Below are positions 46,262-63,570 of a stretch of 64,000 nucleotides of DNA, piece by piece; positions within the stretch are counted from its first letter, which is position 1; each line of letters begins with the position of its first letter. The DNA is taken from the sequence record LC727698.1; one strand, given 5' to 3'. The notes under the pieces were generated by a model, which worked only from the letters and a program-made list of their open reading frames with translations, searched no databases and was not told where the DNA came from. The position numbers were made by a program, and so were the translations under genes.

Positions 46262-46383
46262 TATTGCAAATAAGACTAATTCTTATTTGCGTTTGTAATT
46301 TCATTTGTTATTGCAAATAAGACTAATTCGTATTTGCATTTGCAACGAAAAAGAATATGCAAATAATAACTAATCTTATTTGC
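46251..46383. promoter_or_regulatory. Cluster of three Fur-box-like 19-bp operators (47-bp tandem duplication)
   Basis: GCA-AATAAGACT-A-ATTCTTATT-TGC at 46266-46290, a near-identical copy 47 nt later, and GCA-AATAATAAC-T-AATCTTATT-TGC at 46359-46383. Confidence 0.55.
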
Positions 46384-46546
46384 ATTTGCACTGCCTATTA
46401 TATGGATTGGTAGCATACTTGGAAATGGATAGTAAATAAGTAGTTGATTTGTTTATAAATTTTAATTCTATATCGTACTGATTGACCTTGCTATATATAG
46501 CTCGCGCGCGTATACAAGATGGTAAAAAATAATTTAAAAATATTTT

Positions 46547-46679
46547 AAAAAATGCTTGACTTTCCATTACTACGACCTTAAAGTGCGAACTGTAGACGCA
46601 GTGTGTAGAGCGCTACATAGTAAGCAACGCAGAAAGTAAACAAAAAATGCTTGACGCAATGCAAACTAGGCTCTACACT
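46547..46679 (+). promoter_or_regulatory. Two tandem sigma70 promoters with shared AAAAAATGC-TTGAC upstream element
   Basis: TTGACT-N17-TAAAGT (46556-46584) and TTGACG-N17-TACACT (46651-46679). Confidence 0.75.
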
Positions 46680-46762
46680 GTATACAAGCTTAAGGGGTAG
46701 GTGCCCCGAAAGTGTAGTAAGTAAACAACATAATCCTTCCATCAGCTACAGAGGTATACAAC

Positions 46763-47467
46763 ATGTCCGTACATATCACTCGTCAACGTACCGACAAACA
46801 ACACGTCCTGGCACTGGCAATCAACGGTGTGGTCATCGGCCAGACTATGGCTACCTACACCACCCCGAGCAAGCGCACCTGGTCGGCGACCGCCGAAGTC
46901 GAACTGGCAGACGGCACCGTCGTACAGTTCGAGCAGAAGGAAGTGTTCAGCGCGATCCGCATTACCCGCGAAATCGAGCAGGCGCTCGACGGCAAGGAAC
47001 TGGCGGCCAAGTACACCCCGGAACCGAAAGTTCCCGGGCAGAAGGGTCCGAAACCGCTCACCGACGAAAGCCGACTCAGCAACGCGATCGCGATCGTCAA
47101 AGCGGCCATCACCCACACCGGCTTCGACGAAGCTACCCTGGTGTTCGACGGGGTCGACAAGGCCAACTTCGAGCAGAACAGCACTTCCGTCGGCAACAAG
47201 CTGCGCCGCCTGGGCTTCGTCTTCGAACTCGGCGCCGGCAAGGCGAACAGCGGCAAGGGCTTCCTGATCAACCGCAAAGCGCAGGCCGAGGCAGAAGCTG
47301 CCGAACGCAAGGCCAAGCGCGATGCCGAGAAGAAGGAACGCGAAGAAAAAGCGGCGGCTGCCAAGCGCGAAGCTGACGAACGTAAGGCCAAGCGCGAAGC
47401 CGAGCGCGCCGAAAAGGTCGCTGAAAAGAACGCAGCGATCGCCGGGGCGGCACAGGAAAGCAAGTAA
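46763..47467 (+). CDS. Early host-codon-optimised protein with A/E/K/R-rich helical C-terminal tail
   Basis: GAGG RBS, about 60% GC, tandem promoters and terminator. Confidence 0.9.
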   Translation: MSVHITRQRTDKQHVLALAINGVVIGQTMATYTTPSKRTWSATAEVELADGTVVQFEQKEVFSAIRITREIEQALDGKELAAKYTPEPKVPGQKGPKPLTDESRLSNAIAIVKAAITHTGFDEATLVFDGVDKANFEQNSTSVGNKLRRLGFVFELGAGKANSGKGFLINRKAQAEAEAAERKAKRDAEKKEREEKAAAAKREADERKAKREAERAEKVAEKNAAIAGAAQESK

Positions 47468-47482
47468 TTGCCCAACTGCGCC

Positions 47483-47509
47483 GAAAGGGGAGCAATTTGC
47501 TCCCCTTTC
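47483..47509 (+). terminator. Terminator
   Basis: GAAAGGGGAGCA-ATT-TGCTCCCCTTTC. Confidence 0.85.
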
Positions 47510-48238
47510 TTCATGACCATATAATCTATATACTACTGTGTCTTTAACTATATTTTCTATATCAGCTAGTTTGTATGCAATAACTTGGTATTCTATGCCA
47601 GCGACACAATGTTGTTATATAGACATAATAACACGCGACGCTGATATTTTTATAACCTATCCATTTTATAATAACATACTTGTATCTAAAATTATTTCTA
47701 ATACAATACCTGTAGGAAGTTATGAACACTATATTAGAGATATGTCGTGGAATAAGAAATGATTATATAACAGTCAATAATTTTACATATGACTACTATC
47801 TAGAGGTAAACACACCTGCGTTTTCTTTAATGATAATTATTCCGACAGTTCCTATATTAGACAATACTTGCATTACTTTTATAAAAAAGTATTAATATGA
47901 ATATATTCTTTATATCAAACAGTCTATCTAATATACTATATCATAAAGCTTATGATATACATATGATAGATATTAAGATTAATAATTCTGCTTCTATTTG
48001 GCTTACATATTCTTTCAATATTACTAAGGTATCATTTAAATATATTATCTAATTCATTTTCTTATTGTATGAGTTGCAATTGCAAATTACTCTTATTTGT
48101 AATTACATATAAACAATCAGTTGCTATTAAAAGTATTTGCTGTTAATATATTATATAACAGTGCAATTGATATTTTAAAATACAGTGTGCAATACATCTT
48201 ACATGTATTAAAATTTGTGTGTTACTTAGTTTGCATTA

Positions 48239-48442
48239 ATGATTAATATACCTCTCTTACAGTACAAAACTAATACTATAGACAATTTGTTCGGGCGACG
48301 GTTCTCAAAATGTATACAAGTGCGAGATGACAATCTAATTATACTTGTTAGTTTCTATATAGAAGGTTCTAAATATAGAAAATTTGTACATAACAAAGAA
48401 TACCTCGAAGGGATTTCAGCATATGCAAACAACAATCGTTAA
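48239..48442 (+). CDS. Array-like small protein
   Basis: MINIPLLQYKTNTI. Confidence 0.4.
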   Translation: MINIPLLQYKTNTIDNLFGRRFSKCIQVRDDNLIILVSFYIEGSKYRKFVHNKEYLEGISAYANNNR

Positions 48443-48689
48443 TGCCCTAAAATCTATTAATGTAAAGTATTCGGATATATTTTACACAAATGGTAATTTG
48501 TGTAATACCGTTACAATACGAAATATTCGCAAAAATGGTAAATTAGATTCGGCAGAACAAATTAATGTAGAATCAGTTGTGAGCAATTATTTGATTCAAA
48601 AAGATTTAAATTTGCCCTTTTCTATTCAGTGGGCAAATAATGATTGTTGCGAAGAGTATACTACACTTATTCTCTTCTTCAGAAAATAG
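48384..48689 (+). CDS. Hypothetical protein
   Basis: Likely start MQTTIV at 48423. Confidence 0.55.
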   Translation: MYITKNTSKGFQHMQTTIVNALKSINVKYSDIFYTNGNLCNTVTIRNIRKNGKLDSAEQINVESVVSNYLIQKDLNLPFSIQWANNDCCEEYTTLILFFRK

Positions 48690-48947
48690 TGTATGATTGT
48701 ATTAAAAAGATATATTCGTTTGCATAGCATATACAGATTGTCTTACTATGCGCACGGCATACATTTTAGCAAAACAAAGAAGATAATGCTTTACGTAGGA
48801 AACGCAGGTCCCGTACCCGTAACATGACAGTATATAGCGTTAAAATGTGCATTTTTTGCACGATTTTGCGGGGTATGCGTTACAAGCAATACACACATAC
48901 TGCTTTTAAAATGCATGCTTACATGCGCTTTGTAGGGGGTTTAAAAC

Positions 48948-49160
48948 ATGCTTAAATTAGTTACCACTGTGCTATACAACGTCTGTGTAGCTTCGTTGAT
49001 AATGATTGTGTTTATATGTGGTATAAATTTAGTAATGTATATAGATAACAATACTGCCAATAATCCAGTTGTTATCTTTATTTCCCTTCTATCGGTTATT
49101 TGGGGCGTTGCGCGGTTAAGCTATATGTTTGTTACTATCCAATTTCAGTCCAAGAAATAA
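48948..49160 (+). CDS. Small membrane protein (2 TM)
   Basis: GGGG RBS; two hydrophobic helices. Confidence 0.55.
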   Translation: MLKLVTTVLYNVCVASLIMIVFICGINLVMYIDNNTANNPVVIFISLLSVIWGVARLSYMFVTIQFQSKK

Positions 49161-49175
49161 AAGTATTGGTAACAT

Positions 49176-49517
49176 ATGATAGATAAAAACGGAAATACAG
49201 AAGACTTTGATTTTGATGATGCATGCACTATAACTGACCTGCCTGTTCCTCTTCAGCAAAAAATACAATCATATAAATTAAATAAAATATTGGTTATGGT
49301 TGCAATCCTTAAATATTCGAACATAAAACAAGAAATTGGATGTTTCGCTATCATATGGGATCATATAATAAAAATAACGGTTGAAGTAAAATGCAACCCG
49401 TATGCAGAAACACACATACTCATGCATGCGCATGTATTTTCTAATTCCGATTCATGTACTCATAGTGTATTGCTGAATTACAGAAACAAATATTTACCCA
49501 CTAATTATTATAATTAA
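49176..49517 (+). CDS. Hypothetical protein
   Basis: 113-aa ORF. Confidence 0.5.
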   Translation: MIDKNGNTEDFDFDDACTITDLPVPLQQKIQSYKLNKILVMVAILKYSNIKQEIGCFAIIWDHIIKITVEVKCNPYAETHILMHAHVFSNSDSCTHSVLLNYRNKYLPTNYYN

Positions 49518-49518
49518 T

Positions 49519-49923
49519 ATGGAAGATATTCTTAAAATTGCCAAACTAATCGGGTACGTAAACATACATGCAAATAAACATTTTCAGTATGGTTTTAACA
49601 AAGATATGGAACATGTATGTGTTAGTGCCAAGACTAGGACAAGTATGAACGGAATAAAATACCTTTATGTAGTAATGAATATATATTATATATATTGCCA
49701 GCAAGAAAGTGTTGCCGTTATATTAAACGAAGTAAACACTGATGAAATGCCTGTATTAGATAATCTTTATGCTAAACTTAATGATTTAGTTACACATAAA
49801 TCTATTATAAAATTTAAATATACAGAAATAACACAAGAACAAATAGATTTGTTGAATAATAGTGAAAGATATATAGTATATTTTGACTCTAATTTAGAAT
49901 ACGGAATAGCTTCGTTTTATTAA
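49519..49923 (+). CDS. Hypothetical protein
   Basis: 134-aa ORF. Confidence 0.5.
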   Translation: MEDILKIAKLIGYVNIHANKHFQYGFNKDMEHVCVSAKTRTSMNGIKYLYVVMNIYYIYCQQESVAVILNEVNTDEMPVLDNLYAKLNDLVTHKSIIKFKYTEITQEQIDLLNNSERYIVYFDSNLEYGIASFY

Positions 49924-49936
49924 TTTTGAGGAATAT

Positions 49937-50134
49937 ATGAAAAAACAAACAGGATTTACAGATTGGCCATTGATTAGTTTGGGTACAATTATTATCTTGT
50001 GTGTATGGGTATTAATTCTACAATACACAGAAATAAATGTACTAGAAGAAAAATGTAACAAAGTAGGTGGTATTTTTAATAACACCGTTTGCATACGGTC
50101 AGATGCAGTTATTAATTTAGATAAGGTAAAATAA
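49937..50134 (+). CDS. Small membrane-anchored protein
   Basis: GAGG RBS; KKQTGF N-terminus, TM helix, C-terminal Cys pair. Confidence 0.65.
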   Translation: MKKQTGFTDWPLISLGTIIILCVWVLILQYTEINVLEEKCNKVGGIFNNTVCIRSDAVINLDKVK

Positions 50135-50135
50135 A

Positions 50136-50393
50136 ATGCCAAAACTTTACGTTAACAAAAAACATGATACCATTTATCTTCAATTAGATCATTTCTCATC
50201 TAATACTGTATCTCCAATTAATTATAACGAAGATGTAGAATATGTAATTGATAGGATCCGTAGTCTGCACAAATCCAGCTTCGGATTTAGTCATATGAAT
50301 ACTCTACAAGAATATCTTACGGCAAGAACAGAACAGGATAAGAAGTTTAAGCTTAAAATAGAAGACTTTGAAGTAGTATCATTTAAGATTTAA
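50136..50393 (+). CDS. Hypothetical protein
   Basis: 85-aa ORF. Confidence 0.55.
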   Translation: MPKLYVNKKHDTIYLQLDHFSSNTVSPINYNEDVEYVIDRIRSLHKSSFGFSHMNTLQEYLTARTEQDKKFKLKIEDFEVVSFKI

Positions 50394-50414
50394 AATTATA
50401 CATAATCAAAGTAT

Positions 50415-50443
50415 TTGACATTTGATGTGTATACTAGTATAAT
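50415..50443 (+). promoter_or_regulatory. Perfect consensus sigma70 promoter
   Basis: TTGACA-N17-TATAAT followed by about 850 nt without an ORF of 60 aa or more. Confidence 0.9.
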
Positions 50444-50449
50444 TTGCTC

Positions 50450-51075
50450 ATGCTGTCGTAACAGCTACTTTGTTCCATTCACAAGCAGCTCTGTTCCATT
50501 ATTGGATATTGGTAGTAGAAACTATCCCCATCGTGCCTACAGTATTGTTCTGTTAGAGACAGATTAAAGCATACAAAAGTAGGTTATTTAAATTATGATT
50601 TTGGGTGCTGAAGTATAGTCGTTAGACAAGGATATGTCTAATGTTGCAAAGGACTATGCGAAACGTATTATATATCTTATCCGATATTAGATATGTAATA
50701 AAAGGATGAAGCTCTGGTAGAAACAGAGTGTAATTCTTGCTTGTATTTCACACGGATATACAAAAGAATATACACACCAACTTCAGCATTGATGTAAATT
50801 TTCTAGCATAGGTATATAACATCGATGTTCCGGGATTCATTGGAAACAATGAGAGAATGATGTAATCTGAGGAAAAAGGTCCCCGCCTCGTCCATATTAC
50901 GAAATGGTTTTGAGTACTTATGCCCTCGTCCTATATTGGCATATGGGTTTTATATTTCTCCCGTAATTACGGGAGAATATAATTTCCTGAACCTACTTGG
51001 AAATGGACGCTTCTGCTGTGCTTCGCACAGCATCTAAGGGCCTTCACCCTTACCGCTAAGAGCAAGAGCAAAAGC
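50450..51075 (+). ncRNA. ~600-nt large structured ncRNA candidate
   Basis: Nested long-range helices 50577-50585/50990-50998 and 50606-50614/50780-50788; GAAA tetraloop hairpin 50837-50852; several local stems. Confidence 0.6.
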
Positions 51076-51309
51076 AATATAATTACAAATAAGAATTAAT
51101 TATTGTTTAGTTTTATCGTAATGAATATGAAGATAAAAACTAAACAATAATTCACATGTAGCGTTAGCTACTGTGAATATCTACTATAGTATTAACCATA
51201 TATGTATACAAGGGCATAATATGGCTGTTACTTGTTGACAATTTGATATATGTGTTACACTGCATAAATCAAATGTACATTACAATGTTTTGATTATTAG
51301 GAACATACT

Positions 51310-51900
51310 ATGTCATTTTCTTTGACTGCTGCTATTAATCGATATACTAGTCTAATAGAAGAAAATTTTAAAATAAGTTATCTGAGGCAATTTAGGTTAG
51401 GATATATCTCGTATAAATTATTAAGAAATAAAACATTATTACATACTGAAATATCACATAGACGTGATCATGTAGCGGTAATTACTTCTTATACATATGT
51501 AGAAAATAATGTCGAATTAAATAAAAAATCATCTTTTGCACATTCATATGTTGTTACTACCGATTGCTCTAAATTTAAAGTAGGAGATATAATACAGTTT
51601 TACGAGCTAATTCCTCGTGGAAATGTTTTTGATATTGAAGAGAATACTCAAATTGGCTGGTCCACCGCCAACATTGGAATTAACGAGAATCCGTTTAATC
51701 TTCAATATATTTCGAACAATAAGTATATTCGATTAGAAACAGGAGATATATTTGTCGGTATTAATGACAGTATGGTAAATGAACTACAAGAACATATGCA
51801 TGTTCATTCTATATGTACTAACGAAACAAAGAAGTTTTATGTAAGAGAAATTGATTTAAACATGCTACATTACAAAAACACATTATGGAATAAAGAATGA
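51310..51900 (+). CDS. Hypothetical protein
   Basis: 196-aa ORF with AGGA RBS. Confidence 0.65.
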   Translation: MSFSLTAAINRYTSLIEENFKISYLRQFRLGYISYKLLRNKTLLHTEISHRRDHVAVITSYTYVENNVELNKKSSFAHSYVVTTDCSKFKVGDIIQFYELIPRGNVFDIEENTQIGWSTANIGINENPFNLQYISNNKYIRLETGDIFVGINDSMVNELQEHMHVHSICTNETKKFYVREIDLNMLHYKNTLWNKE

Positions 51901-52445
51901 ACTACAAAGCATTAGAAGTATTTTATTTCTTTCTAGAACATTACAAGGTAAATCCAGTCGCCGACTTGGAATTTAAATTCGAACCCTCGGGTAGTGATGA
52001 TCAATCTAAGCGCAAGTCATCACTGTCGTTTGTTAAACGCATTGGTGTTCTTACTCCTTCATTTAACGAATTATACGAAGTTCAGAATCGATTCATGACA
52101 GATCTTCGAGAAATGAATGTAGTATATAAGATAGGATTTAATTATAATGCATTCAACGTATTAGCACCTTTGTATGCAAGATATGAAAAGAATGTAAAAG
52201 AATTTCGTCGACTTTTAAAGAAATATTCGAGTTTCAACGAAGTAACAGAATATTACAAAAAAGCCGACAACATGTTACCGGACAATGTATACGAAACAAT
52301 GAAGGAAGATTTTTCATTGTTTAATGACGTTACTACAAAGAGGTTATCTGAAATAAAACTTTGTTATCCTAATTGGCAAGTATGGGATTCTGAACATCCT
52401 AACTGGGAAACAATAAATCAACTTTATAAGAATGCAAAGAAATAA
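51897..52445 (+). CDS. Hypothetical helical protein
   Basis: 182-aa ORF, ATGA overlap. Confidence 0.7.
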   Translation: MNYKALEVFYFFLEHYKVNPVADLEFKFEPSGSDDQSKRKSSLSFVKRIGVLTPSFNELYEVQNRFMTDLREMNVVYKIGFNYNAFNVLAPLYARYEKNVKEFRRLLKKYSSFNEVTEYYKKADNMLPDNVYETMKEDFSLFNDVTTKRLSEIKLCYPNWQVWDSEHPNWETINQLYKNAKK

Positions 52446-52454
52446 TGCATATTT

Positions 52455-52480
52455 AGAAAGGGAATTATAATTCCCTTTCT
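52455..52480. terminator. Palindromic terminator
   Basis: AGAAAGGGAATTATAATTCCCTTTCT. Confidence 0.8.
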
Positions 52481-52496
52481 TTATGGATCTATATTA

Positions 52497-52521
52497 GCAA
52501 ATGCTAATTAATCTTATTTGC
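52497..52521. promoter_or_regulatory. Fur-box-like operator
   Basis: GCA-AATGCTAAT-T-AATCTTATT-TGC. Confidence 0.5.
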
Positions 52522-52573
52522 ACAAATTTAATCCTATTGTGTTTTCTATTTTGAAGTGCTACATTACATGTAG

Positions 52574-53161
52574 TTGCATAAAACTATATACAGGAGAAAT
52601 GATATGTGCTATGCATGGGATATCAAAGACGGGGATGATATCGAAGTCGAAGCAGTTATGGATGAACGAAGCTATGAGTGGACCGGCAAGTTACGTATCA
52701 TCCAGTATCGGACCCTTCAATCAGCTCAGTGGCGTGTTATTATCAATATAGTAGAATTTTGGAGTCATTCTACTGAAAGTATACTGAAAGAACTTGGTAT
52801 AGAAGCTAAACACATCACTAAAGGATATGCTACACTTAGTATGGTTCGTTTCCCGGAAGTTGATTACCTATTTGGTGTAACACCCGATAATGCAGATTAT
52901 GTAACTGTTAACCACAGTGCAGTAGATATTTCTGACAGTTGGTTTGTTGCAAAAAACATAAAAGCAGTTATGTATCATCTGGGATCTGAAATTCAGATCA
53001 CTCCGTGGTTTGTGCGTAAAGGTAATAACGAGTCAAACTTCGATTGTATTGATCGATTAGTAGCTCTAGTAAAAGAGAATACTGATGTTGACACGTATCA
53101 GTACATCAAAGTAGGTTGTCCTGAGGACAAGTCATTTTACTTTGCGTGGATAGACAAATAA
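52574..53161 (+). CDS. Hypothetical protein
   Basis: ORF; likely start at ATG 52604 after GGAG. Confidence 0.7.
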   Translation: MHKTIYRRNDMCYAWDIKDGDDIEVEAVMDERSYEWTGKLRIIQYRTLQSAQWRVIINIVEFWSHSTESILKELGIEAKHITKGYATLSMVRFPEVDYLFGVTPDNADYVTVNHSAVDISDSWFVAKNIKAVMYHLGSEIQITPWFVRKGNNESNFDCIDRLVALVKENTDVDTYQYIKVGCPEDKSFYFAWIDK

Positions 53162-53237
53162 TTCGTTTGCTATACGTACTAATACGTTGTATACTGTTAG
53201 TACGTATAGTAGAAGTAGCACATAACGTTTTGATTTA

Positions 53238-53501
53238 ATGGAGCCTAACATGAAAAAAGAATTTGAATCGTGGGTTCGGACTCGTTCTTCGGCACCGCTT
53301 GCGTATAATGCAGTTGACGACTTGTACCTCAACCCGCATGTTCAGGCACGCTACGAGGCTTGGAAAGCCAGTCGTGTGGCACTAAGGGTAGTGTTGCCGA
53401 AATCTCACATGGCGTCGGAATACGCGCCCAAAACAAAAGTTTTCAATACAACCGATATGGAACTGGCCCTCCAAGAAGCCGGTATCGAGGTAGTGAAATG
53501 A
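53238..53501 (+). CDS. Prophage-type hypothetical protein
   Basis: EFESW...Y....VQARYEAWKASR.AL.V.LP pattern recalled from Pseudomonas/enteric prophage ORFs. Confidence 0.7.
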   Translation: MEPNMKKEFESWVRTRSSAPLAYNAVDDLYLNPHVQARYEAWKASRVALRVVLPKSHMASEYAPKTKVFNTTDMELALQEAGIEVVK

Positions 53502-53764
53502 GCAGACTGACCGCTGAGCAAGCCCGTGACATAGCGCGAGCGAAAGACGATGTCGATGCCATCCTCAACGACATCGCCAAAGCAGCCGCAGAAGGAAAGT
53601 ACGTGTACACTACCCGCGCATATGGGTTCGGCATCGGCACCTCGCGGCGCAGCGAAGCGATCCTCAAAGTGTTGCGTAGCCTCGGCTACGACTGTGCGGT
53701 GCATGCCGAAGGACGCCAGTCTGTTGACCTGTGGCTCGAAGTAAAATGGGGAGACAAGCCATGA
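53498..53764 (+). CDS. Prophage-type hypothetical protein
   Basis: GC-rich; start MSRLTAEQARD at 53498 (ATGA overlap). Confidence 0.75.
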   Translation: MSRLTAEQARDIARAKDDVDAILNDIAKAAAEGKYVYTTRAYGFGIGTSRRSEAILKVLRSLGYDCAVHAEGRQSVDLWLEVKWGDKP

Positions 53765-54492
53765 CTGACACCAACAAAATAAAAAAGCTAGCAAAACTGG
53801 CTACGCCGGGTCCGTGGTATGCAACTTGGGAGGAAGGCGATGACATTGCATGGTCGAATCTGTTTCCTGTAATCCGAGCGGACAATGGCGAAGTCGTGAT
53901 CGGTAACGAAGGCTTTTACAGCGATTTGGAGCAGGACAAGGCTAACGCCACTTTCTGTGCTGCCGCCAACCCCCGAGCCGTCCTCGACTTGCTAGACGAG
54001 ATCGACAGGCTCAGGGCAGAGCGAGACGCCGCCCTGGCCAGGGTCGTAGAGCTGGAACGCGGCAAGGTCTACGTCGAAGCCCGGCAATGCGACGAGTGCC
54101 AGCATGTCGGGATCAACGATTCCGCCACGGTCGTGGCTGCCTGCCACGAATGCGATTGGACCGGACCAGAGCCAGAAGAGGATAAGTGCCCCGGTTGCCA
54201 GAGGGAGAATTGCATGGCCGCAGCCTGCCCGCAGTGTGGCGCCCGATATGTCCTTGTTGCCAGCGAAGAGATAGCCGCCCCTGTAGCCCAGGCTCAGCAC
54301 AGCGTGCCAGAGGAATGGCACTGCATGCTAGCGAATCTTCAGTGGCACTACGAGCCGTATGACGATCACTACCACCGTGACCAGGGCTTCTATTGCCCGG
54401 TCTGTGGCGGTGAGAAGGACGAAGGGCACAAGCAGGGTTGCAACCTGGCCAAGTTGATCGCCACTGCCGACCTCAAAGAAGACAAGAAATAA
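53761..54492 (+). CDS. Ead/Ea22-like protein with CxxC zinc-ribbon modules
   Basis: LAKLATPGPW...ANATFCAAANPRAVLDLLDEIDRL (ea22/ead signature); multiple CxxC; about 60% GC. Confidence 0.75.
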   Translation: MTDTNKIKKLAKLATPGPWYATWEEGDDIAWSNLFPVIRADNGEVVIGNEGFYSDLEQDKANATFCAAANPRAVLDLLDEIDRLRAERDAALARVVELERGKVYVEARQCDECQHVGINDSATVVAACHECDWTGPEPEEDKCPGCQRENCMAAACPQCGARYVLVASEEIAAPVAQAQHSVPEEWHCMLANLQWHYEPYDDHYHRDQGFYCPVCGGEKDEGHKQGCNLAKLIATADLKEDKK

Positions 54493-54533
54493 AATTCTAA
54501 ATTACTCGAACAAACATAATGGGAGCAGCATAC

Positions 54534-54764
54534 ATGAGCCTCAAATATAACGGATATGTCTTTAACATCGGTATCCTTGGCCAAAACGAAGCTATCAGTG
54601 AATACGCCTATCCCACCGATGATCCCGAAAGTGATAAAAAGAAAGCTTTTTTGACTGCAATGGCAAAATTCGTCGAATCAGATGATTTCGAGAAATTTAC
54701 TAATCAAATGTATAACAATTTCTCGATTAATGTTCAAGCACTAGTTTCTACGTCTACAGAGTAA
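54534..54764 (+). CDS. Hypothetical protein
   Basis: GGAG RBS before MSLKY. Confidence 0.65.
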   Translation: MSLKYNGYVFNIGILGQNEAISEYAYPTDDPESDKKKAFLTAMAKFVESDDFEKFTNQMYNNFSINVQALVSTSTE

Positions 54765-54769
54765 ATTAT

Positions 54770-54823
54770 CAGTATTGATGCTGATATAGACTATTACAGC
54801 TTCTTGTATCAGCATCAATACTG
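54770..54823. repeat. 17-bp perfect inverted repeat with 20-nt spacer
   Basis: CAGTATTGATGCTGATA ... TATCAGCATCAATACTG. Confidence 0.85.
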
Positions 54824-54976
54824 CAAAAAATAAAGAATAATTAATTCCAGTTCTTTGTTCCTGTATTAAGTGACAATAAAGAAGGCATAACTACTTTGTC
54901 TTTGATGATAAGTAGTAATTATCCTTACGATAACTACAAGAATATCGACTAGCTATTATGATAGAGGCAAAAATAA

Positions 54977-55153
54977 ATGAACATTTTAAAACATATATAT
55001 TGGGCTGTGCGTTATGGTGATTGGAATATAGGATGGGATCCGACTTGGGGTAGCAAACCTGATGAACCTTTTATTTGGTGTAAGCCGATATATTATGACG
55101 GACATCATTGCTACCTGCGAGTAGGCTACTTTTGGATAGGAGTAACATACTAA
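54977..55153 (+). CDS. Small Trp-rich protein (58 aa, missed by ORF track)
   Basis: GAGG RBS; MNILKHIYWAVRYGDWNIGWDPTWG...YYDGHHCYLRVGYFWIGVTY (hand translation). Confidence 0.65.
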   Translation: MNILKHIYWAVRYGDWNIGWDPTWGSKPDEPFIWCKPIYYDGHHCYLRVGYFWIGVTY

Positions 55154-55203
55154 CATTTACAATATATCTATAAAAGAATATATCAGTAACACAGTTGTTA
55201 AAT

Positions 55204-55228
55204 TGCAAACACTAATTAATCTTATTTG
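55204..55228. promoter_or_regulatory. Fur-box-like operator
   Basis: GCA-AACACTAAT-T-AATCTTATT-TGC. Confidence 0.5.
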
Positions 55229-55394
55229 CATTTGCTATCTTGTATAATAGAAACGACTTCTAAACATGGATATGAGATGGAAAACTTAGATAGGATCTCT
55301 GTTACAAATTTTTGAGTTACAATACATAGTAGTTTTGCTATTATGTGTTTATAGAAGTTTAATAACAGAACTAAAACATAAAGGATTGTCTGTC

Positions 55395-55736
55395 ATGAAA
55401 AGTTACGCAAAGTTTTATGTAGGGAAAAACATATATGATGCTGAAGTGCCGGATTTGGACATAAACATGTCAGATGCAGAACTTTTCGAAGTAGCACTGC
55501 ATCAAATGGCAGTACAGTGGTCTAGCACTGCCGGGCATCCGCATCACAAGGATGCAATGCGTAAAGACGGCAAGGTAGCCCGGAGTAAAGAACGGGTGTA
55601 TATTCGCGGCAACGGCTGGTCCGTTTCGTTACATAGTCCTGAATTTGTAGAAAAACATTCGGCATACCTTGCCGCAGCGGAGTGGAAACTACTAACAGAT
55701 TTGCTTGTGTTTGACACTTGCTGGAACGCTAATTAG
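55395..55736 (+). CDS. Hypothetical protein
   Basis: AAGGA RBS before MKSYAK. Confidence 0.7.
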   Translation: MKSYAKFYVGKNIYDAEVPDLDINMSDAELFEVALHQMAVQWSSTAGHPHHKDAMRKDGKVARSKERVYIRGNGWSVSLHSPEFVEKHSAYLAAAEWKLLTDLLVFDTCWNAN

Positions 55737-55763
55737 TAATTCTCTCTACACAGGAGAACGGCA

Positions 55764-56096
55764 ATGAATACTATAAGTGTAAGAAATATGCGTTATATTG
55801 TACGCGGTTTGGTTACTCATGCAATTGCCCGGGGTTATTCAGTTTCCGTTTATGAAGGGGGCGACTGGGCGATCGAGAAGAGTACTTCTGTAAAAGATAT
55901 TATGAATTCTATCATGTCTACTGACAGTGATACATTCTGTATCTATAATGCAGAGAAAGTGAAGGTAGGTCATGTATATTGCATTTATTGCAATAGTGAT
56001 TACGAAGTTATTGCAGATTACACCGATTCACCTCTTATGCAATCGATTCTCGTCGAAGCTCTACGCAGAGCAAATCGAATAGAAGAACTGAGCTGA
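55764..56096 (+). CDS. Hypothetical protein
   Basis: AGGAG RBS; GY.VSV.EG...IADY pattern recurrent in phages (recall). Confidence 0.8.
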   Translation: MNTISVRNMRYIVRGLVTHAIARGYSVSVYEGGDWAIEKSTSVKDIMNSIMSTDSDTFCIYNAEKVKVGHVYCIYCNSDYEVIADYTDSPLMQSILVEALRRANRIEELS

Positions 56097-56098
56097 GA

Positions 56099-56129: not shown

Positions 56130-56141
56130 GTATGTTACAAG

Positions 56142-56166
56142 TTAAACAAGATTAATTTGCATTTGC
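56142..56166 (-). promoter_or_regulatory. Fur-box-like operator (minus orientation)
   Basis: Reverse complement reads GCA-AATGCAAAT-T-AATCTTGTT-TAA. Confidence 0.45.
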
Positions 56167-56201
56167 TATGTAATAATATTTTCTATTGAATTAAATATTA
56201 C

Positions 56202-56438: not shown

Positions 56439-56445
56439 GAAGTAA

Positions 56446-56751: not shown

Positions 56752-56752
56752 A

Positions 56753-57046: not shown

Positions 57047-57047
57047 T

Positions 57048-57075
57048 AATAAAGGGGGAATTATCCCCCTTTATT
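57048..57075. terminator. Terminator
   Basis: AATAAAGGGGGA-ATTA-TCCCCCTTTATT. Confidence 0.85.
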
Positions 57076-57281
57076 TTTCTTTTATAAACATAAATAATTC
57101 GCATTTGCACTGAAGATGCTTTATAACGCATAAATTTACATAGCTAATACACACATATTGCTAACGTTAAAAAGCGCGTTATATAGCTTATAATTGCATA
57201 TTGTGCAATGCATTTGTTGGTGTTATATTAAACATGCGCAACAATCAACTATACAAAAACATTTATTATGGAGATACAACA

Positions 57282-57572: not shown

Positions 57573-57757
57573 AAAAAGCTCTTTCAAGTGTAATAGGCAT
57601 CATTGTTCTGTTACTAGGCGTATTTATGGTAGATAATCCTACAATAGGATTAATGCTAGGAGGGTTAGTAGGTAGTTATATTTTCAGCATAGGCGGAGTA
57701 ATTCTATGTGTTATATCGTTTATGATATTTGCACTTGCCTTTGTTGAGATGAAATGA
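57569..57757 (+). CDS. Small membrane protein
   Basis: Almost entirely hydrophobic, Gly-rich. Confidence 0.6.
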   Translation: MKKALSSVIGIIVLLLGVFMVDNPTIGLMLGGLVGSYIFSIGGVILCVISFMIFALAFVEMK

Positions 57758-57955
57758 ATGATTTATTTAAGTATTTGGACATTTGTATCTATAATAGTAT
57801 CGATATATCATAATATTTTAACTATAAAAATGCATAAACAGGTACTGTTGTATAAAGATTATACTTTTTATAAGGAAAGATTAGATTTTGTCTGTAATAG
57901 TTATATATTTTTCAATGTAATATTCTTCATTTTCATTGCATGCGTTACAAAATAG
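57758..57955 (+). CDS. Small membrane protein
   Basis: Two hydrophobic segments. Confidence 0.45.
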   Translation: MIYLSIWTFVSIIVSIYHNILTIKMHKQVLLYKDYTFYKERLDFVCNSYIFFNVIFFIFIACVTK

Positions 57956-57979
57956 ATCACAAAAAGTTTTAAAATTCAG

Positions 57980-58008
57980 TTTACAGCATGCATAGTTTTA
58001 CGTATTAT
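57980..58008 (+). promoter_or_regulatory. Sigma70 promoter in GA/GG-free island
   Basis: TTTACA-N17-TATTAT. Confidence 0.7.
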
Positions 58009-58054
58009 AAACACACAAAGCAATACAGCATAACGCATTGTAAGCAACACTAAA

Positions 58055-58280
58055 CGGGAGACACCGTCCCGCAAGCAGCCCGCCCGCGATGTTCGCGGGC
58101 TGCGGCAAACAGGTGTACAAGGTCTAGTAACGTGGAAGGCGCAGCATACCTTTCCCTAAATCGGAAATTGGTCAATGACGTACCTGCCCCTGGACACTGC
58201 TAGACCTTGCTGCTACAGGCGGGACAGCTACAAAGGTACACTGTATGTATCTATGCTTTACCCCGCTTTGTAGCAGGTCT
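58055..58280 (+). ncRNA. GC-rich multi-helix structured ncRNA candidate (~225 nt)
   Basis: Perfect helices 58066-72/58219-25, 58075-83/58095-103, 58118-27/58200-09, 58227-35/58266-74; no ORF; own promoter. Confidence 0.7.
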
Positions 58281-58512
58281 TAAAACGGTCTACTGGCATA
58301 TGCCTTAGTGCTAGTAGGAATCATTAACCTAAAACTATTATATGCTTCCTGGAGGTGAAGAGTATGCCGCCGCAGCATTAAATATACATTATGATGATGA
58401 TAATTATGAATGCCGAAACACCGCTTCGATTCGTTTAAAAGACAAATGTCTGAATCGAATGTTTTTGGGCAAAAAGGTCCCTTAGATGGGATTTTTTTGC
58501 GGCTGCTAACTA

Positions 58513-58537
58513 GCAAACGCGAATTAATCTTATTTGC
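58513..58537. promoter_or_regulatory. Fur-box-like operator just upstream of promoter TTGACT-N17-TACATT (58557-58585)
   Basis: GCA-AACGCGAAT-T-AATCTTATT-TGC. Confidence 0.5.
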
Positions 58538-58614
58538 AATTTAAGAAAAATACCAGTTGACTGTAGCTTGTTAACATAGTACATTTAACTCATAAATCCG
58601 CAGGAGTAGCAGTT

Positions 58615-58782
58615 ATGTCGCTGAAAAAGAAACTTTTAAATTCTGTGCAGATTAAATATTTCGGCAACATTTATACTTACATTTATGATGCCGTTCATGA
58701 CGTTATTTATTTCGATAACCAGCAAATGTCTTATGCTGAATTTGAAGAGGCAGTAGACTGTAAGCTAGGAGAAGTTCTGTGA
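58615..58782 (+). CDS. Hypothetical protein (55 aa, missed by ORF track)
   Basis: AGGAG RBS; MSLKKKLLNSVQIKYFG... (hand translation). Confidence 0.7.
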   Translation: MSLKKKLLNSVQIKYFGNIYTYIYDAVHDVIYFDNQQMSYAEFEEAVDCKLGEVL

Positions 58783-59054
58783 ATGAATATGTTGATACAC
58801 ACAGAGCTAAAAGAATACTAATAATTTCTTCTATATGTTTTTTTGTAACTGGCATTCTGATAGGATACAGCCTAGCGTCGAATTCTGAGTCTGCTTCGTT
58901 ATATATGCAGTATAAAGAACTTGTAAAGTCTTGCGAAGCAGAATTGCCAAGAAATGAAAATTGCCAAGTAATCGTATATGCTATACCAACACCCGAAGTA
59001 GAAGAAGAGAAACTAGAAATACAAACAATTCTTAAAGGGGTCGAAATAAAATGA
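58779..59054 (+). CDS. Membrane-anchored hypothetical protein
   Basis: TM helix; CE.ELPRN.NC motif. Confidence 0.7.
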   Translation: MNEYVDTHRAKRILIISSICFFVTGILIGYSLASNSESASLYMQYKELVKSCEAELPRNENCQVIVYAIPTPEVEEEKLEIQTILKGVEIK

Positions 59055-59287
59055 GCGTATACTGTAATTGCATAGCATGCGGTGGAGATGATCCGTATGC
59101 TGTATGTGAAAATGTGTTAATGGATATCCAAAAGCACAAATATAATACTGGTCCCAGCTGGGGGCTGGTAGTTGCGGCAGTATTGTGTTTAGTAGGAATG
59201 GGATTAGCAGGTAACGCAGCACTATCTGATAAAAAAGAAACACCGTGCGAAACTACACAACAAAAACAAGAGGTGTATAATGAGTAA
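59051..59287 (+). CDS. Small Cys-rich membrane protein
   Basis: CNCIAC, C-terminal TM helix. Confidence 0.6.
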   Translation: MSVYCNCIACGGDDPYAVCENVLMDIQKHKYNTGPSWGLVVAAVLCLVGMGLAGNAALSDKKETPCETTQQKQEVYNE

Positions 59288-59486
59288 CAAAACAACAGAC
59301 ATGCTGGTAGATGAATTTCTGTGCGAGCGTGCATCTTTTTCTCCGTTTAGCGAAGGTGTTCATGCAGCTAAACTAGGGCAGAAATATACAGACTGCCCGT
59401 ATACCAAAAATGAGCCGTATGAACGTAACGAATGGATTCGAGGACATCAAATGTGGCATGATTATTCTGTTCAACAATACAAATAA
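59280..59486 (+). CDS. Rmf/CrpP-fold small protein
   Basis: FSEGVHAAKLG....DCPY......RNEWIRGH parallels RMF RGYQAGIAG....CPY...RSQWLGGW. Confidence 0.6.
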   Translation: MSNKTTDMLVDEFLCERASFSPFSEGVHAAKLGQKYTDCPYTKNEPYERNEWIRGHQMWHDYSVQQYK

Positions 59487-59501
59487 TATTCAGAGGATAT
59501 T

Positions 59502-59705
59502 ATGAAGAAACTATCTATGTGCGATTTTGCCAAATGGAAGGCAAACTATTACAGCACTAATAAATCCGGTCAGCCACTCCGGCTAGGACAAGCATTTATT
59601 AACGAATTTTCCGAACAGGGTGATATGCCTCAGCCAAATCTATATTATGAAGAAGATAATGCAACTGCTGAGCTTATCATTCTAGAAAAATACATTATAT
59701 ACTAA
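59502..59705 (+). CDS. Hypothetical protein
   Basis: GAGG RBS; RLGQAF.N....LYYE motif common in phages (recall). Confidence 0.75.
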   Translation: MKKLSMCDFAKWKANYYSTNKSGQPLRLGQAFINEFSEQGDMPQPNLYYEEDNATAELIILEKYIIY

Positions 59706-59715
59706 GGAAGTAGTA

Positions 59716-59910
59716 ATGTATCTTGCACACCTATTCGCTTTGGTCCCGTCTATGTTTGCAGTATTAATTAATGCTATCTTTATTAAATACGGTTTGGGAC
59801 CTGCTTCTATAATAGTATTTATGGCCTTAGTTGTAACTGTAACAGGAATTGGGTCTGTAATAGATATGATGCGTGCATTGTCTGAAGTAGACAATATTAT
59901 TGATAGATAG
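59716..59910 (+). CDS. Small membrane protein (2 TM)
   Basis: AAGGA RBS; hydrophobic. Confidence 0.65.
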   Translation: MYLAHLFALVPSMFAVLINAIFIKYGLGPASIIVFMALVVTVTGIGSVIDMMRALSEVDNIIDR

Positions 59911-59935
59911 TATTTATGTATGCATAAGAGAACTT

Positions 59936-60235
59936 ATGAAACTCAACGAAGTTACTACAATTTCTGATCTAGACAATATTCCTGTCACTGACAAATTTAT
60001 AGTTGTCGGCGAAGATATGGTAGGTCTTGCTTTTATCGATAACGATGGAAAGTTAAATGATGGATTCTTTTTTGAGTGTACTTATACTCAGAATAAGGAA
60101 CAAATATTTAAAGCTGTTCAACATTTAAAAAAACAAGTAGATGAATTAAATAATTGTAATAAAGAGAAAGTTATAGCACATATCATGCGAGCTCCTGAGT
60201 TTGCATATGTTTGGGTATACTTTGAACAAAAATAA
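59936..60235 (+). CDS. Hypothetical protein
   Basis: Start set at MKLNEV. Confidence 0.6.
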   Translation: MKLNEVTTISDLDNIPVTDKFIVVGEDMVGLAFIDNDGKLNDGFFFECTYTQNKEQIFKAVQHLKKQVDELNNCNKEKVIAHIMRAPEFAYVWVYFEQK

Positions 60236-60258
60236 TAGTTCTATATTTTTTGATATAT

Positions 60259-60283
60259 GCAAACGCAAATAATTAGAATTTGC
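60259..60283. promoter_or_regulatory. Fur-box-like operator (divergent)
   Basis: GCA-AACGCAAAT-A-ATTAGAATT-TGC. Confidence 0.4.
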
Positions 60284-60517
60284 AGAACCTGTTACAAACT
60301 TTCTGTTTATATAAAATACAATCATGCTATAATAGTTTATAATAAAACTGTAAGCATATAGCACCAAAAGAACAAAGATGAAGTTCATTCTTTGTCTAAA
60401 GATTAAGTTTGCTGAGAATTTTGATAAGAAACTTCAACTGCTAGATATTATATCAATAGTGCATTTATCATGCATTGAACAGAAAAGAAGTACTCTTTTA
60501 TCTACGAGGAAAAGCAA

Positions 60518-60733
60518 ATGAAATACAAAATCATTCTTCAAAACCGTAGCAATGATGTTGTCGCTGAATTTTCGGTAGATAACGAAATTAACCCCGAGAT
60601 CATGGATACTTCTATTATTGTTCATGAAAGGACATCGTATATGTACACTGGCTCAGGCGGTTCTTACTACGATACCATTTATTTTAGTGAAATATATAAG
60701 ACCACTAACACGACAGACTTGTCGTTGCTATAA
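60518..60733 (+). CDS. Hypothetical protein
   Basis: GAGGA RBS. Confidence 0.7.
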   Translation: MKYKIILQNRSNDVVAEFSVDNEINPEIMDTSIIVHERTSYMYTGSGGSYYDTIYFSEIYKTTNTTDLSLL

Positions 60734-60806
60734 CAGAAAACGCTTTACAATAGCTCTAAATGTGCTATTATGTAGTTGTACATAAAACAACGCAGGAGAT
60801 TATATC

Positions 60807-61004
60807 ATGCGTAGCACACTCGGAGTAGAACATGCATCGAGAGAAATTCTTTCTGCATGGGTCGATGTAATGCAGCAACTCAACTGTGAGCATTTCTATA
60901 GCGAACTGAAAGACAATGCAGTTCGCTTAGATTTACAGGAATATATGTATACTGAACGTCTCGTTCAATATTATACAGATCTTCCAGTCACTAATGCTGT
61001 TTGA
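60807..61004 (+). CDS. Hypothetical protein
   Basis: AGGAG RBS; promoter TTTACA-N16-TATTAT at 60744-60771. Confidence 0.7.
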   Translation: MRSTLGVEHASREILSAWVDVMQQLNCEHFYSELKDNAVRLDLQEYMYTERLVQYYTDLPVTNAV

Positions 61005-61025
61005 TGCCTTCGTCGGGCGTGAACT

Positions 61026-61060
61026 ACATTCAAAAGGAAAGGACCTTTCCTTTTGAATGT
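61026..61060. terminator. Palindromic terminator
   Basis: 17-bp arms ACATTCAAAAGGAAAGG-A-CCTTTCCTTTTGAATGT. Confidence 0.85.
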
Positions 61061-61173
61061 TAAGTGTAAGTGCAAATTAATCTTATTTACTTGTTACAAT
61101 TTAGTTCTTGAATTCACACATAATAGTATGTATAGTTTTAATATATAAGATACCAACATGCGAGGTTGTAAAA

Positions 61174-61626
61174 ATGAAACTTCATAATATGAATGGTAAT
61201 ATTTTTATTCGGTTTGAAGTAGATACTTCGTCGGATAATTTTGTAGAAAAAGTTTACGAAGAAATTATGCAGCTTCCTGCAAAATTGTATTTCGAAAAGA
61301 TAGAACGTAGAACTTGGTTCTGTAGCTTTTACACAGGCTACGACGAATTGGTAGAATTCGTTAATGAAATAAAAGACAGAGTTAGTTCAGAAGGTGTTTT
61401 CTTTGACAGACCATTGCAGCTAACTCTTATCAATTCGGGTGGGGTAGAAGTAAATATTTCCGATATAGAACCAGATCTTCACTATCTCTTTGATAACGAT
61501 ATTACAACTACAAAACTCATCACTATGGAAGGATCTTGCAATATGGTAGATTTGCTCATGTGCGAATGGGTACCTATTAGCATCCGAACTTCCATTGCTA
61601 AGGCATTTACTGACAAATTTTTGTAA
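61174..61626 (+). CDS. Hypothetical acidic protein
   Basis: GAGG RBS before MKLHN. Confidence 0.7.
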   Translation: MKLHNMNGNIFIRFEVDTSSDNFVEKVYEEIMQLPAKLYFEKIERRTWFCSFYTGYDELVEFVNEIKDRVSSEGVFFDRPLQLTLINSGGVEVNISDIEPDLHYLFDNDITTTKLITMEGSCNMVDLLMCEWVPISIRTSIAKAFTDKFL

Positions 61627-61718
61627 TAAAATACCTGTTGACGCATATAGCAATATGCGCAATAATATGCACGAAAGCAAGAACAGATCCAAATAACCTT
61701 TTTATAAGAGATTATATT

Positions 61719-62366
61719 ATGTCTAAGTATCTTTCTTTTAGCGTAAACGTAGACATGGACAACGCTGGTCTGCTGAAATGGTTGCGTCCTACCACCGGAC
61801 GGCTAGATGGATTCGAAGAGAGTGTTAAAAACTTCGTTTCTTCTTTCCGCTCAATTGAGTCTAGCCCCACAGTGTTTCAAGTTTACGACGATGATAATCA
61901 GCCGTTGCAAGTAAGCAACATGAGCTGCTTCTTCCGGTACTATCCGGTGTATGGTATGTGCCTTGCACCGGGTTCGATGGTTAAGGAACAATATCGTCGG
62001 GAGATCCTCGACTACACTACTGACGAGTTCTGTTCATTCAGTAACTACTTCAGCGACGGCAAGGCAATCCGCGGCGGGGCAGTCTTGTGGTGGGATGTAG
62101 AGAAAGACTTAGTATGGTCTGTTAGTCCCGAATTGATTCGCCTTGTATATGCCCGCTTGCAAAGCGATATGGATATCGGATGGTATCATCTCGGGCAAGA
62201 AGTTATGGCTGTTGTTCCCCTTCGTTCGTATCCCAATGATGTTGCCCGATGGAAATATGTACAGGGTAATATCTGCGGCATCGATGATCAAGTAAGCATT
62301 CGCAGCAATGTCGACGGTCGAGTCACCCGGCTTAACTGGGAATACATCGTAACCCAAGGAGGCTGA
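61719..62366 (+). CDS. Hypothetical protein, partly host-type codons
   Basis: Start set at MSKYLSF. Confidence 0.75.
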   Translation: MSKYLSFSVNVDMDNAGLLKWLRPTTGRLDGFEESVKNFVSSFRSIESSPTVFQVYDDDNQPLQVSNMSCFFRYYPVYGMCLAPGSMVKEQYRREILDYTTDEFCSFSNYFSDGKAIRGGAVLWWDVEKDLVWSVSPELIRLVYARLQSDMDIGWYHLGQEVMAVVPLRSYPNDVARWKYVQGNICGIDDQVSIRSNVDGRVTRLNWEYIVTQGG

Positions 62367-62367
62367 T

Positions 62368-62595
62368 ATGGGCGGTCTTGCTAATATAATTGCATGCATA
62401 GCTTCTATTGTTGCAATTGTTACTGGAAATATCTGGTATTTTATTGCACTATTGCTATGCACAGCATTTATGTCTCCCGAACGAAAAGGATCATTAATTG
62501 ATGTATTTTCGTTCATTGTAGGGATTGTTGCTATATTTAACGGAGACATTGCATGGGGCATAGTGTTCATAGCATTAGTGACAATAGTTAAATAG
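62368..62595 (+). CDS. Small membrane protein with internal duplication
   Basis: GGAGG RBS; ASIVAIVTGNIWYFIALLL repeated as VGIVAIFNGDIAWGIVFI. Confidence 0.7.
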   Translation: MGGLANIIACIASIVAIVTGNIWYFIALLLCTAFMSPERKGSLIDVFSFIVGIVAIFNGDIAWGIVFIALVTIVK

Positions 62596-62624
62596 AAAGG
62601 AAGGGGTTTAACCCCTTCCTTTCT
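62594..62624. terminator. Palindromic terminator
   Basis: AGAAAGGAAGGGGTT-T-AACCCCTTCCTTTCT. Confidence 0.85.
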
Positions 62625-63029
62625 TTGCAGGTGTTAAATGTCATCGATTTTTTATCTTAGCGAATTAACAGAATACATAGAAATTTTAAACAATAAAAGA
62701 ATAAAAATAAGTTCCAAGACATATTCTATAGGATATGTATCACTAGAAACACCTCGGCGCACATTTTACTGGACACTTTTTGGATGAAATACAATAATCA
62801 TATCTAAATAGCTACCTACCTTTATATCAAAAACCATTCTATGAAATATATTTCCTAAATCATATTACAAAAGTTATATTTGAATTTTGGATTCTTATCT
62901 CAACCTTGCATTGCAATATAAAATGCGAATATGAGTGTGCTATATATATTTGCATACGCATGTACATATGCATAAGCGTATTGAGAAAAACAATTTATTT
63001 TATTCTATACGATTATCTTTAATACCTAT

Positions 63030-63374
63030 ATGTTGTTTGATAATAAAAGTATAATAAGTAAAAGACATTATCCATTGTATAATGGTTTTAATATATTTCG
63101 CTGTAGTGTCGGATGTATATATTTTTCATATGATAAAATGTCATTTATTCACGACATATTCATGCAAACCATTTCGTTGTTCCTTACGACGTTATTATTG
63201 TTTTTACTTATAACTCCTTTATATTATATAGGATTGAAAAATCCAGTCAATATAACTACATTTGTTTCGTGTTTAATAATAACCATTCTTATAACAAGTT
63301 ATTATTTTATGTCAGTTTTGACTTATATATTCTGTATTACTGTTCAGTCAAAAATTTATAAAAGAAAGAAATAA
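63030..63374 (+). CDS. Hypothetical membrane protein
   Basis: Two C-terminal hydrophobic helices; weak RBS. Confidence 0.35.
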   Translation: MLFDNKSIISKRHYPLYNGFNIFRCSVGCIYFSYDKMSFIHDIFMQTISLFLTTLLLFLLITPLYYIGLKNPVNITTFVSCLIITILITSYYFMSVLTYIFCITVQSKIYKRKK

Positions 63375-63381
63375 TTTAGTT

Positions 63382-63435
63382 TCTTTTTCAATATCTTTTT
63401 CTTTTTCAATATCTTTTTCTTTTTCAATATCTTTT
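63382..63435. repeat. 18-bp pyrimidine-rich tandem repeat (3 copies)
   Basis: TCTTTTTCAATATCTTTT at 63382, 63400, 63418. Confidence 0.9.
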
Positions 63436-63459
63436 TCTTTATCTTTTATCATTGCAAAT

Positions 63460-63570
63460 ACAAATAATAATTATTCTTATTTGCATTTAGTGATGTAAAT
63501 AATTCTTATTTGTATTTGCGATTAATTCTTATTTGCTACAATAGATAGAATAAGAATAATTCACATTTGC
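63460..63570. promoter_or_regulatory. Cluster of four Fur-box-like operators
   Basis: AATAATAAT-T-ATTCTTATT (63463-81), GATGTAAAT-A-ATTCTTATT (63492-510), TTTGCGATT-A-ATTCTTATT (63515-33), AATAAGAAT-A-ATTCACATT (63549-67). Confidence 0.55.

Follow-up and report, generated by a model that had tools for sequence, protein, structure and literature searches.

Which protein reads a palindrome that is repeated throughout the early region of a virulent jumbo phage, a regulator of the host or one that the phage itself supplies? The question is raised by the final 64 kb of LC727698.1 (64,000 nucleotides, hereafter the window), the record of Pseudomonas phage sp. 30-3 (phi30-3; 284,544 bp), a PA5oct-like jumbo phage of Pseudomonas. 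The window starts at record base 220,545 and runs to the end of the record; positions below are those of the window unless the record is named. Window 46000-54000 is 100% identical to phi30-3; for PA5oct, MIJ3, Paride and seven further records of Wroclawvirus, the identity is 96-98%. The PA5oct counterpart of this stretch falls within an annotated terminal repeat of 39,080 bp, and the terminal-repeat genes gp34-gp105 are the highly transcribed set at 5 min (PMC7318152). A phage of this type relies on host RNA polymerase; PA5oct is sensitive to rifampicin and lacks its own RNA polymerase, and sigma-70-type promoters (TTGAC / TATAATA) have been reported for it by its authors (PMC7318152 and preprint). 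An initial annotation of the window had pointed to 19-bp operators in this region that resembled those of the iron regulator Fur. We find that about 24 copies of a 25-bp box head some 20 early transcription units within a PA5oct-like long terminal repeat and, judging from the sequence, we give an even chance to the binding of these boxes by host Fur. The palindromic motif is mentioned neither in the PA5oct transcriptome paper nor in its preprint (PMC7318152), and the boxes were found described neither in the PA5oct, MIJ3 and Paride papers nor by a full-text search for the motif strings.

A 25-bp palindrome confined to the early block

The degenerate pattern GCAAAYRNNAATWANTCTTATTTGC, with up to three mismatches allowed, matched 17 times at 13 distinct places in the window, all within 46266-63570, where 0.02 matches were expected from dinucleotide shuffles. 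A weight matrix trained on the window sites, with sites called at 23 bits or more, gave 15 sites between 46 kb and 63570 (the boxes in Table 1; those at 56142, 57084, 63495 and 63546 lie on the minus strand), of which 57084 and 63512 were added to the 13 places found with the pattern. No position of the window before 46 kb reached 14 bits with this matrix. The motif is thus real and confined to the block, and the initial annotation, which had not noticed it before 46 kb, was right on both points. Most of the copies that it listed were also recovered, except that the one at 51085 proved to be a half-site (ACAAATAAGAA), that the one at 55204 begins at 55205, and that 57084 on the minus strand had been overlooked.

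With the same matrix, the motif runs on past the record end, with out-of-sample sites at record 428, 1148, 2469, 4046, 5727 and 7391 and weaker ones. In all, eight copies beyond the 15 of the window lie directly past its end, and a cluster of half-sites is found at record 1690-2011. The rest of the genome (record 50001-220544, about 170 kb) gave zero matches. A lone weak box-like match at record 37800-37824 (L003; three mismatches, 20.8 bits), inside an annotated coding sequence and far from the block, is probably due to chance, and three single matches in a scan of IMG/VR for the motif are probably chance as well. All sites were found at syntenic places in PA5oct (8,670-35,435), which is the block of strongest early transcription.

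Column, symmetry and core-match counts given here and below rest on 21 aligned sites (42 half-sites or 42 flanks). The aligned sites hold about 25 bits across 25 bp in the form of a 12-1-12 palindrome, which replaces the 19-bp unit first proposed, and their layout in hexamers is [GCAAAT][NNNAAT] N [ATTCTT][ATTTGC], with the outer GC...GC as the strongest positions. Positions 1-6 and 20-25 (GCAAAT / ATTTGC) and positions 10-12 and 14-16 (AAT / A-N-T) are mirror-symmetric, whereas positions 7-9 (R-C-N) and 17-19 (C-T-T) are asymmetric. The boxes occur in both orientations, and an extra in-phase GCAAAT outer hexamer is present on 7 of the 42 flanks (0.28 expected). Note that the central 5 nt of the box at 46313-46337 are CTAAT in phi30-3 and ATTAG in PA5oct and MIJ3, a spacer inversion as expected from hairpin-mediated template switching.

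The box was also found in more distant relatives. The metagenomic contig L021 (48% GC), only 29% of which aligns, at 78% identity, carries 11 half-sites against 0.55 expected as well as full boxes, among them an exact copy of the phi30-3 box at record 1148; a cluster of four boxes stands before its gene of the gp86 type (see below). L023 has nine half-sites against 0.42 expected, with five copies before its gene of the same family, and L019 has three half-sites before its own. In the distant relatives L015 and L016 (44% GC), the dispersed motif was not found. At the position of cluster 1, L015 carries a unique perfect 25-bp palindrome, AAATGAGATGAGTCTCATCTCATTT (3032-3056), with TGAGA-type Fur-like ends and another spacing. 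Among close relatives, divergence is 2.8-2.9% in the boxes and 3.4-3.8% in the flanks, which is too little to judge purifying selection.

Likeness to bacterial Fur boxes

The 9-1-9 consensus AATGAgAATcATTctCATT was derived from Xanthomonas Fur-repressed genes, against which proven Xanthomonas Fur boxes score 15-17/19, and the E. coli consensus is equal to it after a 3-bp shift (PMC1790865); the consensus quoted in the initial annotation is this published one. The Fur motif of Acinetobacter is a 25-nt palindrome, and its listed sites hold ATTCTTATTT and AATAAGAAT halves (PMC3055841). When compared with the 9-1-9 core, with the Xanthomonas consensus as reference, the phage boxes match at 12-16 of 18 positions (mean 14.1), and with the extended 25-bp form they match at 17-21 of 24. 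In the window, 18 positions reach at least 14/18 to the core, 11 of them in the block, and both positions with at least 16/18 are also in the block; the match is clearly above the AT-rich background, as required of a Fur box. Thus the resemblance noticed at first extends to the best core matches of the window and to the outer arms GCAAAT/ATTTGC, which also occur in Fur motifs. Two traits of Fur boxes are present: an inverted repeat with an AAT-N-ATT centre (7-1-7 / 9-1-9), as seen in the column counts and the mirror symmetry, and an extended 25-nt palindrome or hexamer array with outer hexamers of the GCAAAT type. The phage box therefore shares with the beta- and gamma-proteobacterial Fur box (AATGAKAAT-N-ATTMTCATT; 25-nt form in Acinetobacter baumannii) the 12-1-12 symmetry, the centre, the outer hexamers and the extra in-phase hexamers, but it has no TGA/TCA core in any half-site and is sited upstream of predicted promoters; moreover, about 24 copies stand in 25 kb of one lytic phage. 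A comparison with the E. coli 19-mer GATAATGATAATCATTATC (9-12/19, little above background) had spoken against Fur; this verdict was dropped, because the 19-mer stands 3 bp out of register with the 9-1-9 form and takes no account of the outer hexamers.

We also searched 185,579 bacterial genomes with a phage-derived pattern. The search gave 36 sites, almost all from beta- and gamma-proteobacteria and some from genomes of 60-70% GC. Their left halves, which were free in the pattern, were GCAAATGATAAT or GCAAATGAGAAT; position 7 is G in 24 of the 36 sites and position 8 is A in 29. Large open reading frames adjoining the sites encoded TonB-dependent receptors in seven of the ten tested. These neighbours, together with the core and the 25-nt form shared with the published Fur motifs, support Fur as the reader of the phage boxes. 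The architecture and most of the bases are those of the extended beta-/gamma-proteobacterial Fur box, and we regard it as evenly balanced whether the boxes are operators of this type.

Boxes between terminators and predicted promoters

According to the record annotation, each box is intergenic and ahead of plus-strand genes, in agreement with the earlier description of the copies as always intergenic. In most units, the box stands 0-22 nt after the hairpin and T-run of the preceding unit. The promoters named in this text are sigma-70-like predictions. A predicted promoter (at least the 90th percentile of background) follows the box in 9 of 19 units, where 1.9 units are expected by chance; in these nine, 28-41 nt separate the box centre from the start of the -35 hexamer, and the predicted start site is 63-76 bp downstream of the centre (in eight of the nine, the centre is at -63 to -69). 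In the other units, the best predicted promoter is 100-220 nt from the box, so the placement just upstream of promoters, as first described, holds for about half of the sites. The features are summarized in Table 1.

Table 1. Boxes and associated features of the early block (window coordinates)
Feature	Position	Strand	Remarks
12/42-nt tandem repeats rich in CTTATTCA	46154-46261		immediately before cluster 1
Box, cluster 1	46266-46290		near-perfect palindrome, 11/12 mirrored pairs; 15/18 to Fur 9-1-9 core
Box, cluster 1	46313-46337		central 5 nt inverted relative to PA5oct and MIJ3
Box, cluster 1	46359-46383		extra in-phase ATTTGC hexamer after the box
gp38-like gene, paralogue of gp86 and gp98; PA5oct virion protein	46763-47467	+	downstream of cluster 1
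Box	48076-48100		upstream of operon beginning at 48239
Isolated half-site ACAAATAAGAA	51085-51095	-	'partial' copy of the initial annotation; <14 bits as full site
Box	52497-52521		between terminator-like hairpin and predicted promoter of anti-END1 homologue
PA5oct gp52 homologue (published END nuclease inhibitor)	52604-53161	+	first gene past box 52497
Box	55205-55229		additional ATTTGC hexamer at 3' side
Box, opposite orientation	56142-56166		immediately 3' of terminator-like hairpin
Box overlooked by the initial annotation	57084-57108		abuts terminator 57048-57075
Box	58513-58537		just past 3' end of ncRNA002-like transcript; predicted promoter TTGACT-17-TACATT at 58557-58585
Box	60259-60283		upstream of predicted promoter 60306-60333
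Box	61066-61090		upstream of predicted promoter TTGAAT-17-TATAGT at 61108-61136
18-nt tandem repeats	63380-63447		immediately before cluster 2
Cluster 2, four boxes (63460, 63495, 63512, 63546)	63460-63570		upstream of gp86-like gene
gp86-like paralogue, start (crosses record end)	63920-64000	+	downstream of cluster 2

The multi-box clusters precede two paralogues, the gp38-like and the gp86-like genes, and the third paralogue, gp98-like, follows the box at record 5727. When aligned, the long leader that follows cluster 1 proved not homologous to the one after cluster 2, and an Rfam search of window 36-64 kb gave no match. An Ead/Ea22-like protein is encoded at 53761-54492; this gene and the gp52 homologue make the box-headed block, at least in part, an island of anti-defence genes. 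GC rises to about 42% in islands at 46000-48000 and 52000-56000, against about 30% for the genome; the islands coincide with genes of the box-bearing block and are suggestive of acquired cassettes. An imperfect palindrome of ATTTGC-type hexamers is present at 45693-45758, upstream of the predicted promoter of an ncRNA001-like transcript, and part of the ncRNA001-like region (about 45880-46160) is conserved in the distant contig L015 (about 2700-3017). Near the left boundary of the terminal repeat, 46-nt and 16-nt tandem repeats are found at 37509-37727; the 'CRISPR' annotation of the homologous stretch in the Deifobo record (L014 10970-11267) is probably a mis-call of such tandem repeats.

Candidate readers of the boxes

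The resemblance to Fur boxes is stronger than the initial annotation could show, but several observations weigh against binding by host Fur. The boxes overlap no predicted -35 or -10 element in the 19 units, unlike in classical Fur repression, and since they lie upstream of the predicted promoters and not over them, a role as classical Fur operators is unlikely. The TGA/TCA core is absent from all 42 half-sites, in which left halves read TGC or TAC and right halves TAA; position 8 is C in 16 of the 21 phage sites, against A in 29 of the 36 bacterial sites, and position 19 is T in 19 of the 21. In the Fur family, the deviating positions set specificity, as seen from work on Bacillus Fur, PerR and Zur; the G at position 2 of the heptamer separates Fur specificity from that of PerR and Zur. 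The boxes of L021 hold the same core variant as those of phi30-3. The bacterial matches, in turn, were chosen with the right half fixed and therefore speak for compatibility, not equivalence. The paper on the host transcriptome during PA5oct infection reports no iron-regulon response and does not mention iron genes at all. The DNA itself may be a further obstacle: PA5oct DNA resists enzymes in a manner indicative of a modified G within GA or GG, a modification that could impede a host protein, and 7-deazaguanine synthesis genes (folE, queD, queE) are encoded by the phage. Both half-site deviations eliminate a GA step, with the left half retaining its G as TGC, and the initial remark that differences from the Fur consensus remove a GA/TC step is thereby borne out for the TGA core. 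Note that the TGA core is also missing from some of the listed Acinetobacter Fur sites (PMC3055841).

The deviations could instead belong to a protein of the phage. It is possible, though we hold it only tentatively, that the boxes serve as operators for a protein which the phage encodes or brings in with the virion, with a specificity that resembles or copies that of Fur, and by which the early block would be switched on or off. In both half-sites, the positions that set Fur specificity show a systematic and conservative deviation, as they do in L021, and the multi-box clusters stand directly upstream of genes of the gp38/gp86/gp98 family in phi30-3, L021, L023 and L019, a layout typical of autoregulated regulators. 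This family (46763-47467; 63920-64000, continuing at the record start; L003 5919-6380) is the sole positional candidate. Its members have an N-terminal domain of about 85 amino acids, followed by low-complexity acidic linkers and basic tails, the latter a further point in favour; PA5oct gp38 is a virion protein, which might reach the cell together with the DNA. A dedicated phage protein could also be at an advantage on modified DNA, and two non-coding RNAs that are transcribed throughout infection have no canonical box upstream. On the other hand, a match of 17-21/24 to the extended Fur box would be very unlikely for an unrelated protein, and the boxes are not over promoters. The N-terminal 85 residues were modelled by AlphaFold with a predicted local distance difference test score (pLDDT) above 90 as five strands and a helix, using an alignment of ten sequences (a single-sequence model had a pLDDT of 52, and no regulator was recognised), but the fold matches no known DNA-binding fold: Foldseek gave no significant match in the PDB (best E-value 0.07) and only the paralogues in BFVD. 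Pfam and PHROGs gave no match for the family, whose homologues are confined to related metagenomic contigs. Among 36 distinct early proteins (30 searched against Pfam and 10 against PHROGs, four of them in both), none showed a Fur-like or other DNA-binding domain, and a PDB sequence search found no regulator. The covariation of operator and regulator between relatives that is expected of a phage regulator was not seen: the gp86-type protein of L021 is about 40% identical to the phage family proteins, while a box of L021 is identical to that of phi30-3. An invariant box beside a family that falls to about 40% identity implies a very conserved binder, and a highly conserved host protein fits better. 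Known phage systems offer partial parallels. The sites of phi29 p4, SPO1 TF1 and T4 MotA are likewise short and repeated at many early promoters, and those of TF1 lie in a terminal redundancy on modified DNA, as in PA5oct; however, the box of phi30-3 is Fur-like in sequence and has only a candidate cognate protein in the phage.

The remaining explanations seem less probable to us. There is a small chance that the boxes are passengers of a recombining cassette (terminator, box, promoter and leader) with little function of their own. In L021 (3569-5985), different genes are indeed preceded by four near-identical cassettes, each some 150 nt long and made up of a terminator, a box, a TTGCAT-16-TAGTAT promoter and a leader, and some of the breakpoints between phi30-3, PA5oct and MIJ3 are less than 100 nt from a box, one of them inside the box at record 2469, although this link between breakpoints and boxes is suggestive only; nor is the divergence between close relatives given above lower in the boxes. 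Against this, the surroundings of the phi30-3 boxes are mutually unrelated, with the 25-mer alone shared and in both orientations, the box persists in the otherwise unalignable 48% GC relative, and the likeness to Fur boxes would be left without explanation. The PeSL cassettes of T4-type phages are similar in that promoter and hairpin modules are repeated between small early genes at mosaic joints, but the conserved element in phi30-3 is a palindrome like a protein site and is kept where the rest of the module differs. Another host protein, such as a nucleoid protein or a member of the Fur family such as Zur, is a slightly slimmer prospect still: given how the boxes depart from the Fur core, some other protein that reads AT-rich palindromes is conceivable, and a position around -66 is typical of upstream activators, but when judged by eye the consensuses of IHF, Fis, CRP/Vfr, sigma-54 and Zur do not fit, and Fur is by far the closest. 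Among the readings weighed by eye and dropped were sites of IHF, Fis, CRP, sigma-54, lambda CII, RsaL and Lrp as well as a MotA-like -30 box. That the palindromes are RNA hairpins for processing or termination is most improbable. A few copies are near-perfect, and 46265-46291 was called terminator-like by a scan; however, on average 8 of the 12 mirrored pairs are complementary, and the pair 8/18 is C/T in 14 of the 21 sites without compensation, from which we conclude that the sequence is conserved and not the hairpin. The boxes, which come after terminators and before promoters, would also be mostly untranscribed, and Rfam was empty.

If host Fur is the reader, an iron-loaded Fur dimer would bind the boxes upstream of the early promoters. 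With the box centre about 63-69 bp or more before the start, bound Fur would not block RNA polymerase in the classical manner; it might tune or boost the early promoters, for example by opposing the silencing of AT-rich phage DNA. Upstream Fur sites are known to act positively or by relieving silencing. Those of E. coli ftnA and of Neisseria norB/pan1 also sit some tens of bp before the promoter, within AT-rich DNA that is liable to silencing; their activation or anti-H-NS action, however, can serve phi30-3 as an analogy of mechanism only, MvaT/MvaU included. After genome amplification, the boxes could soak up Fur. A more far-reaching proposal, which we consider doubtful, is that a virulent jumbo phage enlists Fur, the essential iron sensor of its host, to activate or de-silence its entire early anti-defence block, with a Fur box re-shaped to the chemistry of its DNA and still readable by Fur on modified DNA, and that replication, with about 50 boxes per packaged genome because the block lies in both terminal repeats, drains Fur and opens host iron uptake.

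Phage Fur boxes are known from prophages, at single promoters. In the classic case, the iron-regulated promoter of the Shiga toxin 1 operon, a phage-borne promoter is read by host Fur, as would be those of phi30-3, but there one box lies over one promoter of a prophage, whereas in phi30-3 a whole early regulon of a virulent jumbo phage carries the boxes, and upstream. A systematic variant of the Fur box across such a regulon would be new, and if Fur does bind, this would be the first known case of a virulent phage that bases its early regulon on a metal sensor of the host. The box-headed early genes include at least one proven anti-defence gene, and Fur reading the boxes would couple the first genes of a phage family considered for therapy to the iron state of the host; the contrast in iron between broth and infected tissue could then alter phage performance in vivo. 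It could also bear on how relatives such as Paride replicate in dormant cells, and it would offer a test case for site-specific proteins facing 7-deazaguanine-modified DNA. Should the binder instead be a phage protein, the boxes mark out its regulon and can be used directly to track it down.

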